The notes below the pieces were generated by a model. It had not been told where the DNA came from and did no database searches. It was given only the letters and a program-made list of their open reading frames with translations. Below, piece by piece: positions 13,815 to 58,573 of a stretch of 64,000 bases of DNA (the first letter of the stretch is position 1; each line of letters opens with the position of its first letter). The position numbers and the translations under genes are program-made. The DNA is from Marsupella aquatica. Lineage: Eukaryota; Plantae; Marchantiophyta. The stretch is from positions 20,471,292 through 20,535,291 of the forward strand of contig OZ316898.1 in NCBI GenBank assembly GCA_973895155.1. The letters run 5' to 3'.

Positions 13815-15491
13815 CTATGGTGGGGACAGGAGAGGCCCAGCAAACTTGCGGACTAGGGGCATGAGTGATGCCATGGCATCGTCAAATTCATAGCCTGACC
13901 CAGCGTCGGGTTGCTCAGAATCACTGGAAATGTTGACAAGCTGATTGCAGGTCGTCATCTGGGGATTCGTAATGCCGTGGAAATGGTGGACTCGGGCAAC
14001 TGAGGCATTGAAATTGATGCCTTCTCCATCGTCGATCATCGCCACTCTATGAACTCCCGAAATGAACACCTTACGAGGATTCACAACATACTTGCGTCGG
14101 CCCGGCGATCCAATGCACATCCAGGGATCCTCGTCGTCGTGTGTGCACTCGGGGCTCTTGTTGCGCCATAGCAAGCGCTCGAGCTGCCACAATTCTCCAC
14201 CGAACTTTTGTTGTTTTTCTGCATTTTGGTTTAAAGTTGACATTGTGCAGTGGCCTGTGGAGAATGGTAAGTTTCCAAACGTCATCCACGGCTTGTCTCG
14301 ATGTTCGTCGAGCAGACCGGGCAGCGTGTTTGGGGCGGGGACGTAGAGCAGCTCGTCGAGATCGTGAAAGAAGGTCCATTGAGCGGTGAATCTGGTTCTG
14401 TGGATGCAGTCGTTGATGAAGAGGAGCTGGTTCCGGTACCAGCTCGGGTACGCTTCTCCTCCTCCCGCTTCGATGAGGGTGAGCAATCCGGCTTTGATCC
14501 ATGGTGCCAGCATCTGTCTCGCTTCCGAGTTCAATGCCTCCACGAGGTAGAAGTAGAAGTGAGCCTTTCCTTCCCAGAGATAATGGTGATACGCCAGCCA
14601 CTTCGGTATCCAGTCTAGGTTATGAGCAGTCCCGTACACTGGCGGTCCGCAGAACGCATACTTGTTGGGGAAATCCGGTTCCGCCAACGTCGACGACTCA
14701 GACTCGGAATCCTTCTGCTGCAGCCATGATTTGCTTCTCTCGCTAACCTCTCCGGGCTTCTCTCGGAACACATCCTCAACCACGTAGTTTGGGCCCCAGA
14801 AGACCGGGCCTCTCGAGACATGCAGACGGAGAACGCCCCCTTCCCCGTCCGCACCGACGGACTGGTTGAAAGTGCAGTTGACAACGGCGGGCACGTAAAC
14901 CATCCAGTTCTCGTCCATTGCCATGTACAAGGAGTTTGCTCCTGTGACGACCGCTGCTCCTTGTTGATCGTCGGGAGATGTCTGTTGTTGTGCTCCATCG
15001 GTGCCGATGTAGCTTTCGTTCCTGGGATCCCACTCGCATCTGAACACTGGCTGCTCGTTCTCATACTTGCGAACTATGACCGACGTGATTCCGAGGACGT
15101 AGAAAGTGTTCAGCGTGTGCCTGTAGACGCTGAAGAGAACCAGGGGATGGTTGGCGTAGCTTAGAGGCTTGAACGCCGCATGACCGGGACTGATCCTGGT
15201 CTCTTCAGGCGCAGAGGCAGACGCAACGGTAGGTGCTCGGGTAGGTGTAGGGCAATCGGCGCCTTGCGAACAACAGGAGACCGGTGACGATCCGATCTCG
15301 ACGTTCAACTCGGGTCTTGCTATGTTCGAGGAACCGAGTGACTGGCCTGCTGCTGCAGCTCTGGAGATCAGGATGTTTCCTTGTTCTCTCCATTGAGCTA
15401 ACTTCGAGATGGCAAGGAAGAGCGGTAATTGAAGCACAAGCACTCCCATTACGAACAGAATTGGTCCCACGACATCCCTGGCCTTCTTCAT
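13815..15491 (-). CDS. Glycosyltransferase family 92 (DUF23), galactan beta-1,4-galactosyltransferase (GALS)-like, single exon, 558 aa
   Basis: Intact ORF with N-terminal TM anchor; motifs FCGPPVYG, WLAYH, HFYFY, YRNQLLFINDCIHR, WTFFHDLDE (DxD) and RRKYVVNPRKVFISGVH typical of plant GT92. Confidence 0.9.
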   Translation of the reverse strand: MKKARDVVGPILFVMGVLVLQLPLFLAISKLAQWREQGNILISRAAAAGQSLGSSNIARPELNVEIGSSPVSCCSQGADCPTPTRAPTVASASAPEETRISPGHAAFKPLSYANHPLVLFSVYRHTLNTFYVLGITSVIVRKYENEQPVFRCEWDPRNESYIGTDGAQQQTSPDDQQGAAVVTGANSLYMAMDENWMVYVPAVVNCTFNQSVGADGEGGVLRLHVSRGPVFWGPNYVVEDVFREKPGEVSERSKSWLQQKDSESESSTLAEPDFPNKYAFCGPPVYGTAHNLDWIPKWLAYHHYLWEGKAHFYFYLVEALNSEARQMLAPWIKAGLLTLIEAGGGEAYPSWYRNQLLFINDCIHRTRFTAQWTFFHDLDELLYVPAPNTLPGLLDEHRDKPWMTFGNLPFSTGHCTMSTLNQNAEKQQKFGGELWQLERLLWRNKSPECTHDDEDPWMCIGSPGRRKYVVNPRKVFISGVHRVAMIDDGEGINFNASVARVHHFHGITNPQMTTCNQLVNISSDSEQPDAGSGYEFDDAMASLMPLVRKFAGPLLSPP

Positions 15492-18678: not shown

Positions 18679-21600
18679 GATTGAGGTTCTCCAAATCAGC
18701 TGTTACAGCCCTTACAGCCCTTACCAACTTAGACATGGATGATTGAATCTAAATTATTATAGCAAAGTAATTGGCCCATACACATGCCTGGGATAGAGCT
18801 GCATGGAGTGCTTGGGGCCTCAGTGTATGTAAACTAGTGGAACCTATCTATGAATGGGCTATGAACAGACCCTCTCCCCTGTGTACCCCTTCATTGTTAT
18901 TTCCATTTATCCAATAAAAAATCCTTTCCCGTTGTTACTGATATTAATTATAAGAATTTATTCAAAATTATGGATTGAAAGCACCCTTTGAATTCCTTGT
19001 TTGCACACTCTCTCCCAGTTACACCAGCAAATTAGGGGAACATTCATTCACAAAATGACTAACTGTCAGTCATCTGCCAAGCCATTGATAGTACTTTGTA
19101 AATGACAAACTTCATCTATGTTAGAGGAAAGTAACATGTTTGGAGGGGACATCCATTAGGGTTAGTTGCCCCAAAATTTCTCAAACTAAAGTTTAGACCT
19201 TGTCCAATTTTGGCTTGGTTGGAATTCTTCAGCACCAGCATTGCAGCTCTTCCGCAATATATAGGTCAGTTAGATTTCATGTTAAATCTATACACTCCAT
19301 ACACCAAAACATAAAACAATACACTGTATTTATGATCTACAAACCAAGTGACTTGAATGACATGTGTCTTGGTTTGTGTTCTGGTTGTACGGCTCATGTA
19401 GATTTAACACACAGTGTCAGTTTAGCATCAGTGAGTGGGGCTGCTGACAGAACTTAATATATACACTGGCGGAAGGATGTTAAAGAACACTGTACCGAGC
19501 GCTGTACATATCTAGCAACTCATGATTCTTTCAAATTGACAGCCAGGCAAAGATGATAATGTGCAGGCACAATTGAATTGGGGAGCCGTTTGTTTATATG
19601 TTCACAATGGTCAAGGAGAAGCGGAGTGAAAACAACAGTGCATTGATCATGCAAACTCTAGTCTAGAAACAAAACAATCAGACCACCCTCTGATTTGTAA
19701 TGCCCAATCGGGCCCCCAATTGTATCATGTTTCTCTTTGGTGCATCTTAATTTTATGAATTTCTGAGGGCCCACTGTCCAAAGGGCCTAGTTAAGTACTG
19801 AATAATCCATCTTTGTGGTCCGTCAAGTTCGGAAGTAGGAGGAGGGGCCAGTTAGGTCATTTTTTGTCCAAAAGATGCATATCAAAATGAACCACAAGTA
19901 TACTGAAACACAAAACCACAGAAAGGTTTAATACTAATTAAGATATGCTTGCCAAAGAAGTACGCTCAGGTGCAATATCCAGGACCTAGTTGCATAATTA
20001 TGCACCCTCAGGCTACTTCAACTTGAATCATTTAACGAAGTGGCACATTTTCTGATCTCCATGTTGGCAGCTGCAATGGATGAAAGTATATTGAAGTATC
20101 ATCGCAGAATGCCTCAAATACCACGGTGAGATGCAATTTAGCGGAGGAAAAAGCTCTATTTGATCTCCTTTGGAGCCACTATACTTGACAAAGAAGTAGA
20201 TAGACCATTGCAACCTACTGTCACTGGACGGACTACCTTGAAACGCAACTTGTTTATTCACGGACCTGTCCTCTGTACTTGTCATGGGTGGCACGGAATA
20301 CTTGGTCCTTCAAAATATTTTGCCTAGCATCAACTTTAGAGTGGACAGTGGATAAGTGCAGAGTGTAAAGTGTAAGGTGGTTGTGCAGTTCCTCAATAAT
20401 ACTTTTTGAAGTGCACTATATTATGCATTCCTATGGCTTTAGAAATACCAAATGCACTAATATTAAAATTTATGAATCTGGAAATTCCACAGTTTGTAAG
20501 TGCAGGTTGCCAGTCACTACACCACAAATAAACAAAGGCATTTTCAGTCTATAAGAGTACAAATGCAGTAATCAATGACTACAACACATATGCTAGAAAC
20601 ATGTATTGATAAGTGCAACAAGTCTATGAGAATACAAATGCATTAATTAATGACTAAAACACATGTGCTAGAAACATGTATTATTTGATAAGTGCAACAG
20701 AAAACTACACGCTGCAGTTTCATGCACTTATCCAGCTGAATTGTGCACTAACAGTATTCTGGGTATGAGAATTCAATGGGTATAACCTGACAAGAAATTT
20801 GTGGAAGAGCATAAGTTTTGTGGAAGAGCATAAGTTACTTCATAGACATTTATTGGAAAGTGCAAGAGACACATATGGAGTAGTGCAGTTACATGCACTT
20901 AGGATAAAGTGCATAATGGTGATAGCTGCAGGCACTTCCAAAAATTTACAGGTAGATAGAATCTGACAAGTACATTTCACCCCGAAGGCACCTTCCATCG
21001 TCTGCCATGATTTGAGGGAGGCTGAGTCTCCAAATCAACAATCAAATGGGACTTGAACCGTCTACCTCAGCTAAATAATTAATTAACTCCTGTGCTTCTA
21101 CAAAATTTCACGTACTTGTTTTTTAGTAGAATGGCGGCCTTGCTTCCTTACGATCGAGAATCTAAGTGCCCCATCATGCAGCGACTGATCATTGGAGGTG
21201 TTTGGATGCGACTTCTGTCATTGCTCCAGATATCGTAGATTTTAAGTCAATGTGCAAATGGCGTTCAGAAAAATGTGAGCAAGCATGATATCCACAAAAT
21301 ACCAATGAGGTTGTTGGAACCAAGGCCACAAATCTAATCCTGGGGCACGACCGTAGTGGCCACCATCGCTGTGGTTGTGGTTGTAATGGAACGGAAAGGT
21401 GAGATCGAACGCATCGACAATCTTCACTGGGACCTGATCGTGTCCTCGCTGCAATTTCTCGGCCACGACCTGGTTGAACATCTCCATTTTCATGGGATTG
21501 GATGACATATCTCGCCCGACTCCCGCTGGCGTGACAGTGGCACGCCATATCAGCGTAGGCCTTCGATCAGCTGGGAGGCTGATGTAAATCTTCATCCAAA

Positions 21601-22793
21601 AATCAATCATGAAGTCCACGGCTTCAGTGTACCCTTCGAGTGTGGGGAATGCCGCTCCGTCGTGCAACCCCGAGTTGATGATGATAGTGTCCGGCCATTT
21701 GGTGCCGTTGAAATGAGCTATCAAGAGGTTCCGATGGTCCTTGTGTTGGGCGAGGGTCGTCAGGCCCTCCCCATTACCATCCTCACTATTCGCTCCGTTG
21801 TAGAGCGAGCTGACTCGGAACAATTGAGAGTAGTTATGCAAATTCATGAATGTCATTTCGTATGTACGCGCTAGCCGATAGTCTGCCAAAGTTGCGCCGG
21901 AAGGCAGGCTCCATTCCAGGATGAAGAATGTCAGGTTCCGAATAGTATCCTGGAAGTTAGAACCACGTCATAAACCACCATCCATCCAAACAGTTCCAGG
22001 CTTCTTCTCGTGTGAAAATCTTGAAGCTACAGTGAGCAGAGTACTCCCAGCCATTGCTTTCCAGGCGGCCCACTGGACCGAAGCACCACATCTCCTCCCA
22101 CCTGTACGTAATGCTTGTCCGGTAGGCATAATTAGCGCTTGCTCGACTCCTCGGGTTTGCAACTGCTGGCGAACCAACTCCGAGTCCAGCGTCCCTGCCA
22201 TGTTGTCCGATCGAAGTCAGTTGGAGTGCACTGCTTCATGGCGGGCTTCTTGGGAGCATTGAGATGATGTTCTGCGATGACCATCTCCAGTTCTTGCATG
22301 AGTATCAAATCCTTTTTTGTCCAGGTATCTGTATACTACTATCCAGCTCCATGCCATGCCAGTTGCCGTAAAGAAGGTATATATCGAGGCTGAAGGCTCC
22401 AGCAAATCGAGACGGGACGAGCAAGTTCAGACTATAAGTCCCGTTTCCCAAGTCCGTTGTTGGGAGCCGTGATAAGTAGTGCAGACTCTCCCGATTGTGT
22501 AAATCCACCTCATAGTAATCCCCTCCAGCACATCGCTTCTCCCCATTTTCAACGTAAGCAACAAGAGTCAGACGATACGGCATATCTATTTCGAAGAAAA
22601 ATTTCCCTTCAACCGAATTTGGAAGTCCTTCCAATGTCGTAAAGTTCGTGGACAAATAATTGTAGCACTCTGAAGTCGTTGTGGCATTGGCATGGAGAAA
22701 ACTCAGCAATGTGCTTGTGTAATTGCTTGATTCCTCCACCATTGCATTGCGCCAATTTGTGTTGCGAGTGTTGTTGTCCTTGGATGACTGTCT

Positions 22794-23167
22794 TGCTGGA
22801 ATTGTTAACACCATGGACCGGCTAGGAATTGTACCTAGGACCTCCAATGTATGGACCGGTTAGGAATTGAACTTAGGAATCATTGTGCTCTACCACTGAG
22901 CTACAGGCCCTTCATGCCTGCATCCCTCATCAGTTTGAGTGATCGAGGTTCGAGGTTCATTTCCAACACCCTCCCTTGTCTGAGCCACACTCATTACAAG
23001 GGAAACTCCTGATCTTTGGCTCTGATACCATGCTGGAATTGTCAATAGCATGGACCGGCTAGGAATTGAACCTAGGACCTCCAATGTACATCACAGTGCT
23101 CTACCACTGAGCTACAGACCCTTGATGCTTGCATCCCTCATCAGTTGAGTGAGGTTCATTTCCAACA
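22794..23167 (-). mobile_element. TRIM (non-autonomous miniature LTR retrotransposon) with tRNA-like cassette in both LTRs
   Basis: 5' LTR 23031-23167 and 3' LTR 22794-22968, both TGTTGGAA...TTCCAGCA on the - strand. PBS TGGTATCAGAGCCA (iMet) 23017-23030; PPT AAGGGAGGG 22969-22977; 5-bp TSD TGTCT at 22789-22793 and 23168-23172. Confidence 0.95.
23051..23121 (-). ncRNA. tRNA-like Pol III cassette within the TRIM 5' LTR (not a bona fide tRNA gene)
   Basis: GGGTCTGTAGCTCAGTGGTAGAGCACTGTGATGTACATTGGAGGTCCTAGGTTCAATTCCTAGCCGGTCCA. A box TAGCTCAGTGG, B box GGTTCAATTCC, perfect D and T stems, irregular anticodon arm. Confidence 0.8.
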
Positions 23168-24107
23168 TGTCTCCACCACTCACCGAAACTTATAAGCTGG
23201 CTGTTCTGCCTATTTGATGAAACCTTGAGAAGAACTACACTGCATGTGATGGCCAGGAGAAATGCATAGGAAGCGACGATTGTCCAGAATTTATTGTTTG
23301 TTCCAAGTCCACAAACACAGTCATTGAGTACCATTTTTAAAATGCCCTTTTCTCGTTTCTCCACGGATAACTTCGTTGGCTGGTCCTTACTACTGCAGTA
23401 GTAAACAAGCCGGTTGGATCTTACTACTGCAGTTTTAAACAAATGCTCTTGATCCGACACCTCTTCACAAATAGATCTTTTTCACAAGTCAATCTAATTT
23501 AAAACTAGTGCTTGAATCGCTTGAATACAAGTGAGTCGTTCCAGTACTGCTTACCAATTAAATAAATATTCAATAATTCTGAAACAGGTGCTCATAGTAA
23601 TTAACTGATCCAGTGAAATTTAAGTTGCAAGCTGCCATTTGGTATATGGCAATACAGACAGGGGAGTGGTCCATTCAGTGTTGGTCAAGGTGCTCAAGCC
23701 CACAATTATGGACGATCAACCTGTACGTAGGTTGCCGCTTATCACAAGCTATCTGGATGGGCAATTCCCAGACCACCAAGATCCAAGATGGAAGGACAAC
23801 GGATCGATTGGCATACTGTGACGGGGCCAATGCCCCTAGAGAATGATTTTAAAGGGTATTAGTGACGCACAAATGTAAATAGGTAGATTTGTGTCATGTT
23901 TTTTTTGCTTTTGTTTTCTTACAACCTCGTTGGAGACAGTTTACGCAAAATAGATGTGGGGAGTTGTTGCTATTTTTTATGTCCTCTTGAGTTCAGTTAC
24001 TGGCCAAGCCTCAGGGAAAGAAGATCGGCCGCTTGCCGGTGCAAGACAAGGCACGTAGCCTAGTGCCGCCTTTTGGGGACTTGCCTAATTTTTGATTTGT
24101 ATCCATT

Positions 24108-56572: not shown

Positions 56573-57343
56573 CGCGTACTAATAAGTGCTCAATGATAAT
56601 AATGTACACTTATCAAGGGTTTTCACTTATACACGTATCATTTGGCACAAAATATTTGGCATGTTTGCAGCTTGCAAAACTGCAAACTCCACTGAAAAAG
56701 GGAGGAAGGGGACTCCTTGCAGTTATGCAGGGTTCTCACTTATGAAGTGCACTTAGAGAGAGACGACTGTCATGTTGCACGTTCCACACATTGGAGTGTT
56801 TTCCGCTCATGCTCACAAAAGCTCTACAATTTGTACATCACCATCTCGTAATGCTCAAATCCTCACGGCAAGAAACCTAATAATGCGCCACTTCTAGAGC
56901 TTCGTCCTCCTTCACGCACAACAGCAGTGATTGTTGCTCCAAGTCGAGAAGGGTTCCTTGACAAGTTGAGATGCCATGTCTCGAGGAGCATTGCATTTTT
57001 CTGCTTTGAAATCTTTCTCCCGTGCAGTTTCTTCGGTGATGGTGTTCGGACAAAACAGCCAAAGATGCCCTGCGTTGGATTCCAGTGATGTATCATTGTG
57101 TTACTGTACTGTAGGTCCGAATCATTGCTCTAGCCGAGTGTCACACTGCGAGCTAGGCTGATTCGGGCCTCTCTCCCAAAGCTTGCGGCAGATGCATCGG
57201 TTCATTATTGCAGGTGGAGGAGGGGTCCAGGTCTGGCCCTTTGGTGGTGATTGCGTCCGTCTATGAATTGGTATGAATATCGATCCAGCTCCGGAGCAGA
57301 TTGGATTTCGTAAGCACCGAAACTTCGGCCTGCGTTGGCTGAA

Positions 57344-58573
57344 ATGGAGAGAATGGAGAGAAAGGACGGCGGCACGACGGCTCTACCGGACGAGCTCGTG
57401 GAGAGGGTTATAGCAATGATGCCGTTTCCATACATTTTCAAAGCTCGATGTCTATCCAAATTATGGCTGGCCCGGTTCGCATCAATTGCATCCCTAAATG
57501 ATGACGAGACGAGGAAGCGCCTGGCCATCTCGTTTCAGAAGCAGGTGGGAGAGAGGTCCAAGCATTGGGGGACCTTCTACCCTGTCTGTATTGACCAGAT
57601 GCATTCCATCGCTTACGACCGGGAATCTCACAGATGGCAAAGAATGCCATCTCTGAGCTATCTCCCCTGGACCATGGTGAATAGTTCACAAGTGCAGATA
57701 AGAGGAGCTCTCTTGTTGGCCCCTAGTTGGCCGATAGTCAACAGACTCAATAGCATTCGGGGACCCCAGGGATACAATTACTTGCCGGCAGAAAGGAAGG
57801 ACCTCTTCGTGGCCAACATTCTGACTGGGAGCTGGAAGCAGTTACCACCTCGTCCCAAGGTCGCTCAAAGAAGCCAAACGTACATGGTGAAGGACCATGG
57901 TGAAACACTGGTGAGCGATGCTTCATCGGGGACGTACATGGTGATCGCGTTCGGTCGAGATTTTGATGGCTACTTTGCACAGATTTACTATTCCAAATCA
58001 GCTGCCTGGACTACTACGAAGCTTGGCGGTGTATCGGATTACCTCTATCTGCTAAGATCCGCTGCTTATCTCAATGGAGTGCTCTATATGCTGGCAGGCT
58101 CCAACAGGGATTCTTTACTGGCCTTTGACATCGAAGTGGGGACTTGGGAAAAGCTAAGATTGCCAGCGACTGATTTAACCAACGAAGAAAAATCCATTAA
58201 GACCTTGGTGGTTTGCAAGTCTGATTTGATGGTCGTAATGGGATTCGGCTCGGCTCCCCGGGAGGATTTTCATGTGCTGAAGCTTGATCTAGGGTCCCTA
58301 CGGTTGTCGAAGGTGGCCAGACGACCCCCTGTTGCTCTTGCTCTGAGCCTAGGCAGGTTCAACTTTTTCAAAGCTCAATTAGGTCAAGAACCTGTTACTG
58401 ATGGAAGGTGCATCTTCCTAGGGATGGACAAATTCGAGGGAACAATGGTGGAATACGACGTGCATGAAAATGAGTGGAGTTGTTCCAATTTCCCGACCAC
58501 CAATCATGCTAAACGCTATGATTGGGTTGCATCTTGCCTTCAGCCTGGCTCGAACTCCTTTGTAGAAGTCTGA
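57344..58573 (+). CDS. F-box protein with C-terminal beta-propeller/kelch-like interaction region, single exon
   Basis: Intact ~409-aa ORF from the first ATG; F-box LPDELVERVIAMMPFPYIFKARCLSKLW; FVANILTGSWKQLPP, AQIYYSKSAAW, AYLNGVLY and LLAFDIEVGTW motifs. Confidence 0.88.
   Translation: MERMERKDGGTTALPDELVERVIAMMPFPYIFKARCLSKLWLARFASIASLNDDETRKRLAISFQKQVGERSKHWGTFYPVCIDQMHSIAYDRESHRWQRMPSLSYLPWTMVNSSQVQIRGALLLAPSWPIVNRLNSIRGPQGYNYLPAERKDLFVANILTGSWKQLPPRPKVAQRSQTYMVKDHGETLVSDASSGTYMVIAFGRDFDGYFAQIYYSKSAAWTTTKLGGVSDYLYLLRSAAYLNGVLYMLAGSNRDSLLAFDIEVGTWEKLRLPATDLTNEEKSIKTLVVCKSDLMVVMGFGSAPREDFHVLKLDLGSLRLSKVARRPPVALALSLGRFNFFKAQLGQEPVTDGRCIFLGMDKFEGTMVEYDVHENEWSCSNFPTTNHAKRYDWVASCLQPGSNSFVEV

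Follow-up and report, generated by a model that had tools for sequence, protein, structure and literature searches.

Helenus, a set of tRNA-bearing TRIMs, has been described from fungi, animals, and one plant, and has been grouped with Ajax and Cassandra as TRIMp3 (Kojima 2024, PMC10886601). According to that paper, the tRNA-like sequence of Helenus has kept box A (TRGCY..YGG) and box B (GGTTC), while a working tRNA is considered unlikely; the sole plant host given there is Selaginella moellendorffii, with the element Helenus-1_SMo (LTR of 120 bp, interior of 85 bp, total length of 325 bp, and TSD of 5 bp; Data S1 of the same paper). In Cassandra, the LTRs carry Pol III terminators, and the conserved PBS is the 12-mer TGGTATCAGAGC, the same as in the element described below (PMC7215508). 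A sequence-only reading of the DNA analyzed here had given the name Helenus to TRIMs with tRNA sequences, correctly as it turned out, and had supposed that the concept might not be new but that the family and host might be. Both suppositions agree with the literature, as Helenus has been published and bryophytes are absent from its published hosts; our literature search recovered no liverwort element of the Helenus kind, and it found TRIMp3 in Kojima's sense in no other paper.

The locus was analyzed within a window of 64 kb (the whole stretch of DNA under study) from the liverwort Marsupella aquatica, in which positions 22794-23167 on the minus strand hold a complete 374-bp TRIM. The 5' LTR (23167..23031, minus strand) is 137 bp long, as delimited by alignment and BLAST, and the 3' LTR (22968..22794, minus strand) is 175 bp long, with two insertions (12 and 26 nt) that the 5' LTR lacks; both LTRs start with TGTTGGAA and finish with TTCCAGCA. 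The two LTRs are identical at 123 of 137 aligned positions (89.8%, MAFFT), the differences being nine transitions and five transversions, and they were paired by BLAST within the window at an E value of 1e-29, while a BLAST search of the TRIM against the 64-kb window returned no further copy. The 12-nt insertion includes a 7-nt tandem duplication (GAACCTC twice), and the 26-nt insertion adds a second, partial T arm together with an acceptor end. Both look private to this 3' LTR, because the loose ends of other copies (see below) are without them.

Directly adjoining the 5' LTR is a 14-nt PBS, TGGTATCAGAGCCA (23030..23017, minus strand), which we take to be complementary to the 3' end of the initiator tRNA-Met, as is established for plant LTR retrotransposons. 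The interior (22969..23030, minus strand) comprises 62 bp, is non-coding, and ends in the purine tract GACAAGGGAGGG (22980..22969, minus strand), which adjoins the 3' LTR; the longest stop-free stretch anywhere in the TRIM is 66 codons. On both sides, the element is bordered by TGTCT, read directly at 22789..22793 beside the 3' LTR and at 23168..23172 beside the 5' LTR, giving a perfect 5-bp TSD (a 5-nt match is expected by chance in 1 of 1024 cases). Thus, the element described in the sequence-only reading, with LTRs of 137 and 175 bp, a 14-nt initiator tRNA-Met PBS, a 62-bp interior, a purine tract, and a TGTCT TSD, was confirmed in every part. It also shows the set of features by which Helenus is recognized, namely, a size below ~1.3 kb, paired direct LTRs, TG..CA ends, a PBS, a purine tract, and a TSD. 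With an LTR divergence of 10% and a damaged 3' LTR, this copy is old and probably inactive.

Each LTR contains a tRNA-like core that exceeded the gathering score (29) of the Rfam tRNA model (RF00005), with 44.0 bits for the core of the 5' LTR (23121..23051, minus strand) and 40.4 bits for that of the 3' LTR (22910..22814, minus strand), the latter with the extra partial T arm. These two cores were the sole Rfam matches in the whole 64-kb window. In both LTRs, the D stem (GCUC/GAGC) and the T stem (CUAGG/CCUAG) are perfect, and the acceptor stem of the core forms six of seven pairs, while the anticodon arm has decayed: it is unpaired and was skipped by the Rfam model. The A box, TAGCTCAGTGG, occurs at 23114..23104 in the 5' LTR and at 22903..22893 in the 3' LTR (both minus strand). 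Only the 5' LTR has an intact, canonical B box, GGTTCAATTCC (23072..23062, minus strand); the 3' LTR has two degenerate candidates (22873..22863 and 22835..22825, both minus strand), GGTACAATTCC and, in the extra partial T arm, AGTTCAATTCC, each one letter off in the conserved GGTTC. A and B boxes at tRNA spacing were found at just one place in the 64-kb window, the core of the 5' LTR.

The possibility that these cores are functional tRNAs was ruled out with ARAGORN, which called no tRNA in the window at the default threshold and only a pseudo tRNA-Thr(tgt) at relaxed thresholds. In addition, the tRNA-like stretches fold no better than their shuffles (z of +0.33 and -0.62), and the cloverleaf of the core is not its minimum-energy fold. 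The cores are tRNA-derived sequences in which the promoter motifs, but no working tRNA, have been kept, the same pattern that Kojima gives for Helenus, and we regard them as promoter relics.

Logan contigs from four public runs, representing organisms A and B and three studies, were compared with positions 22300-23700 of the window, the filled and empty site as well as the family being read from contig tables. In organisms A and B alike, contigs matched the flanks and both element junctions without a single difference. Organism B yielded a further contig in each of its two runs (X3 and X4), in which 22788 is connected to 23170 by only two letters (AA). This amounts to a net loss of 379 bp, the exact length of the 374-bp element and one copy of the 5-bp TSD together, so that a single 5-nt target is kept. 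This empty-site contig carries several other substitutions (~3% over 200 nt), and the empty site is on a diverged allele or homeologue. In organism B, the filled and empty forms had a depth ratio of ~1:1 in one run, as against 1:2 in the other, and organism A had the filled form only; heterozygosity, polyploidy, or pooling of samples may account for the two forms in organism B.

Beyond this locus, 124 to 319 contigs per run matched the TRIM at 85 to >99% likeness. The summed depth was ~20 to 35 times the flank depth over the interior and ~200 to 500 times over the T-arm half of the core; read roughly, since these family figures come from contig tables only and summed depth is not copy number, such depths suggest tens of copies with the 62-bp interior and probably hundreds of LTR-like pieces in the family. 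Contigs that run into unrelated sequence span from the interior or PBS (22981 or 22997) over the LTR border to 23122-23136 (e.g., records 3, 6, 11, 12, and 28 of the contig table). Because these contigs from other loci pass from the interior and PBS into the LTR, other copies also combine interior, PBS, and tRNA-bearing LTR. Loose ends at the LTR borders show low-agreement flanks, as expected of insertions at many loci. Most copies have T at 23033, a letter with which the LTR termini would form a perfect inverted repeat, and none of the listed majority differences between the copies and this one falls in the A box or the B box. Scans of metagenome contigs, with the T-arm half as well as with a degenerate D-arm...T-arm pattern, found nothing.

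These results bear directly on whether a transposon is involved at all. A local tandem duplication of a tRNA pseudogene would account for two tRNA-like sequences that lie 211 to 237 bp apart in direct orientation, yet it would leave no exact empty site in which the 5-nt target is present once, no PBS and purine tract at the expected borders of a unit with TG..CA ends, and no hundreds of contigs from other loci. The empty-site joint and the copies at other loci refute it. The element entered by integrase-type insertion that duplicated 5 bp of target, and it belongs to a multi-copy family; the test set by the sequence-only reading, whether further copies join LTR, PBS, and tRNA cassette, was thus decided in its favor by the contigs from other loci together with the exact empty site.

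The insertion lies in sense orientation within a coding exon of a minus-strand NXPE/PC-esterase-like gene (window positions 21245-23460). At 59% identity, the gene piece downstream of the insertion (22305..22788, minus strand) matches residues 88-221 of a 602-aa protein, P0016, and a further piece (21245-21889, minus strand) matches its residues 388-601, likewise at 59%; the family of this protein has weak Pfam NXPE4_C matches and an Atlas lead to PC-esterase/NXPE. Pfam searches with the three host-gene pieces themselves gave nothing, even at an E value of 10. The piece upstream of the insertion (23173..23460, minus strand) comprises 96 codons with a membrane-anchor-like segment and is not conserved with P0016, a pattern that a type II membrane protein with a variable stem would show. 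This first coding piece also contains a 34-nt tandem repeat (23378-23442, 84% identical) with the palindrome TTACTACTGCAGTAGTAA in each unit. The open frames on the two sides (23173-23460 and 22305-22790) meet the TSD copies in the same codon phase, and therefore an uninterrupted site would be translated without a break; in the filled copy, a stop within the 5' LTR ends the frame, for which reason this gene copy is probably knocked out.

Two other genes were recognized in the window, both single-exon: a GT92 glycosyltransferase gene on the minus strand (13818-15491) and an F-box/kelch gene on the plus strand (57335-58570). The best named relative of both was from the leafy liverwort Calypogeia fissa, with 66% identity for GT92 (74.6% for the gene DNA) and 41% for F-box/kelch, followed by relatives from Marchantia and the lycophyte Diphasiastrum. 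Such matches place the genome among the liverworts, probably in the Jungermanniopsida, but in a species other than C. fissa. A search for the exact GT92 product gave no match. Around its GT92 homologue, C. fissa showed no synteny with the NXPE-like host gene and no copy of the TRIM.

Taken together, the best explanation is a multi-copy TRIM whose core is a promoter relic and which would be transcribed by Pol III and mobilized in trans, and we would put the probability of this reading as a whole at roughly 80%. The promoter motifs suggest the following cycle. The A and B boxes of the 5' LTR core would recruit TFIIIC and RNA polymerase III, and transcription would start at, or just before, the tRNA-like 5' end (~23121), pass through the LTR tail, PBS, interior, purine tract, and 3' LTR, and, since the TRIM itself has no T-run, end at one in the flank, in the manner of many SINE transcripts. 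The repeated part of such a transcript, R, would begin at the tRNA-like 5' end and comprise the remainder of the LTR, which is 91 nt long in the 5' LTR, with its second copy in the 3' LTR. The 3' end of the initiator tRNA-Met would prime the minus strand at the PBS, the purine tract would prime the plus strand, and Gag, reverse transcriptase, and integrase would be supplied in trans by an autonomous element that makes 5-bp TSDs. The same model has been published for tRNA-bearing TRIMs, with Pol III transcription being proposed there as well (Kojima 2024, PMC10886601).

The sequence-only reading had named the supplier as a Copia-like autonomous element, which is only a guess. An initiator tRNA-Met PBS and 5-bp TSDs occur in plant Gypsy elements as well. 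No such helper was found in the 64-kb window, which contained no second initiator tRNA-Met PBS (the 12-mer did not recur with one mismatch tolerated) and no reverse-transcriptase ORF. As for termination, no run of at least four T's occurs on the element strand in the 374 nt, and the first TTTT lies 93 nt beyond the TRIM. Such a lack would be compatible with transcripts having to pass the 5' LTR, but it carries no statistical weight, as TTTT is missing from 34% of shuffles too.

An element without a terminator and with only degenerate B boxes in its 3' LTR might instead be an ordinary Pol II TRIM whose ancestral LTR took up a tRNA-derived SINE or tRNA pseudogene, the core now being a passenger without promoter function; insertion of a SINE into a TRIM LTR has indeed been proposed as an origin by Kojima (PMC10886601). 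On the other hand, the core fills over half of the 137-bp LTR, so that the part upstream of it is just 46 nt long and has no TATA-like motif, and its A and B boxes are intact while the anticodon arm decayed. Moreover, the core is found in other copies of the family. We therefore consider a passenger unlikely. The sense orientation within a host exon raises a different possibility, namely, that the tRNA-like modules serve as RNase P and RNase Z signals by which genomic RNA with repeated ends is cut from longer Pol II read-through transcripts, such as those of the host gene. The parts recognized by these enzymes, the acceptor stem and the T arm, have been kept, and such processing would suit a TRIM that has no Pol III terminator. 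However, the poor folding of the tRNA-like stretches, with a cloverleaf that is not the minimum-energy form, speaks against enzyme substrates; besides, no observation requires this route, and it leaves the conservation of the A box unexplained, making it highly improbable. Promoter function of the core, with transcription predicted to be by Pol III, is thus the reading that we prefer.

A liverwort with many copies would offer a practical system in which Pol III transcription from Helenus LTRs can be put to an experimental test. Elements of this type also have consequences for annotation and for gene space, as tRNA-bearing TRIMs inflate tRNA-gene predictions and scatter potential Pol III promoters among genes. 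A direct cost is seen at the present locus, where the coding exon of a conserved gene is interrupted while the uninterrupted haplotype persists in a related sample, so that the site provides a filled/empty marker.

Compared with other known systems, the liverwort TRIM resembles Cassandra in being a plant TRIM with a small-RNA gene sequence and an internal Pol III promoter (predicted in the liverwort) in each LTR. The sequence in Cassandra is derived from 5S rRNA, with the boxes A and C of that gene, 5S motifs that the liverwort TRIM lacks, and the Pol III terminators of the Cassandra LTRs have no counterpart in it. An assignment to Cassandra was rejected, as its motifs are absent from the TRIM and the window and Rfam gave no 5S match. 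With tRNA-derived SINEs (SINE2), the element shares a tRNA-derived head, A and B boxes, a decayed anticodon arm, and a short, non-coding, multi-copy nature, whereas SINE2 elements have a single head, a LINE-related or A-rich tail, and no LTRs, PBS, or purine tract, and are copied by the machinery of LINEs with variable TSDs; the two LTRs, PBS, purine tract, and 5-bp TSD rule out a tRNA-derived SINE. Classical plant TRIMs (Witte et al. 2001, cited in PMC10886601) are likewise shorter than 1 kb, with short LTRs, an initiator tRNA-Met PBS, a purine tract, and a 5-bp TSD, and are often inserted in or near genes like the liverwort copy, but, as far as the cited account goes, they have no small-RNA gene in the LTR.

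Helenus, in contrast, shows no difference in kind from the liverwort TRIM. The two have in common a pair of LTRs with tRNA-like sequence, a PBS, a purine tract, and a TSD, which is 5 bp long in plant and fungal members; most fungal Helenus families are primed by an anticodon loop (PMC10886601), whereas the liverwort TRIM would use the initiator tRNA-Met 3' end. The sequence of Helenus-1_SMo in Data S1 was compared with the liverwort TRIM by eye only. Their sizes are similar (LTRs of 120 versus 137 bp, interiors of 85 versus 62 bp, and totals of 325 versus 374 bp, with 5-bp TSDs in both), and the tRNA-like core is near the LTR 3' end in both. The PBS reads TGGTATCgGAGC in Helenus-1_SMo and TGGTATCAGAGC in the liverwort TRIM, and the LTR ends read TGTTaGAA...TTCCAACA and TGTTGGAA...TTCCAgCA, respectively. 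By eye, the cores agree at 50 of 58 positions outside the anticodon arm, with 20 identical letters across the D arm (23 of 26 in the acceptor/D-arm block and 27 of 32 in the variable/T-arm/acceptor block). The upstream LTR, the anticodon arm, the LTR tail, and the interior, except for the PBS and purine tract, do not align by eye, and the LTR tail of Helenus-1_SMo has a TTTT that the liverwort TRIM lacks. Judged by the same visual comparison, the likeness falls short of the family rule of at least 80% identity over at least 80% of the LTR and interior. Because only the core, termini, PBS, and purine tract correspond, the liverwort element is a different family of the same kind.

The likeness between the liverwort and Selaginella cores invites the idea that both families are survivors of one land-plant lineage of tRNA-promoter TRIMs that predates the split of bryophytes and vascular plants. 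If true, this would parallel the deep history of Cassandra and would dispense with two independent captures of the same tRNA type. However, the fungal Helenus-1_AmAr of Amylostereum areolatum equals Helenus-1_SMo in 31 of 32 letters of the T-arm block (Data S1, PMC10886601), and since a fungal core is nearly the same, the likeness does not prove common descent of the liverwort and Selaginella cores; the ancient-lineage idea is weakened accordingly, and we regard it as unlikely. An 85-bp interior is also listed for both Helenus-1_AmAr and Helenus-1_SMo in Data S1, and no discussion of their likeness was found in the portion of PMC10886601 drawn on here. Evidently, hosts that are very distant from one another have recruited, or retained, one type of tRNA. 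Since both the concept and a very similar plant example have been published, the liverwort TRIM is best regarded as a further family of the Helenus kind, one that widens the published plant host range of these elements from a single lycophyte to a liverwort as well.
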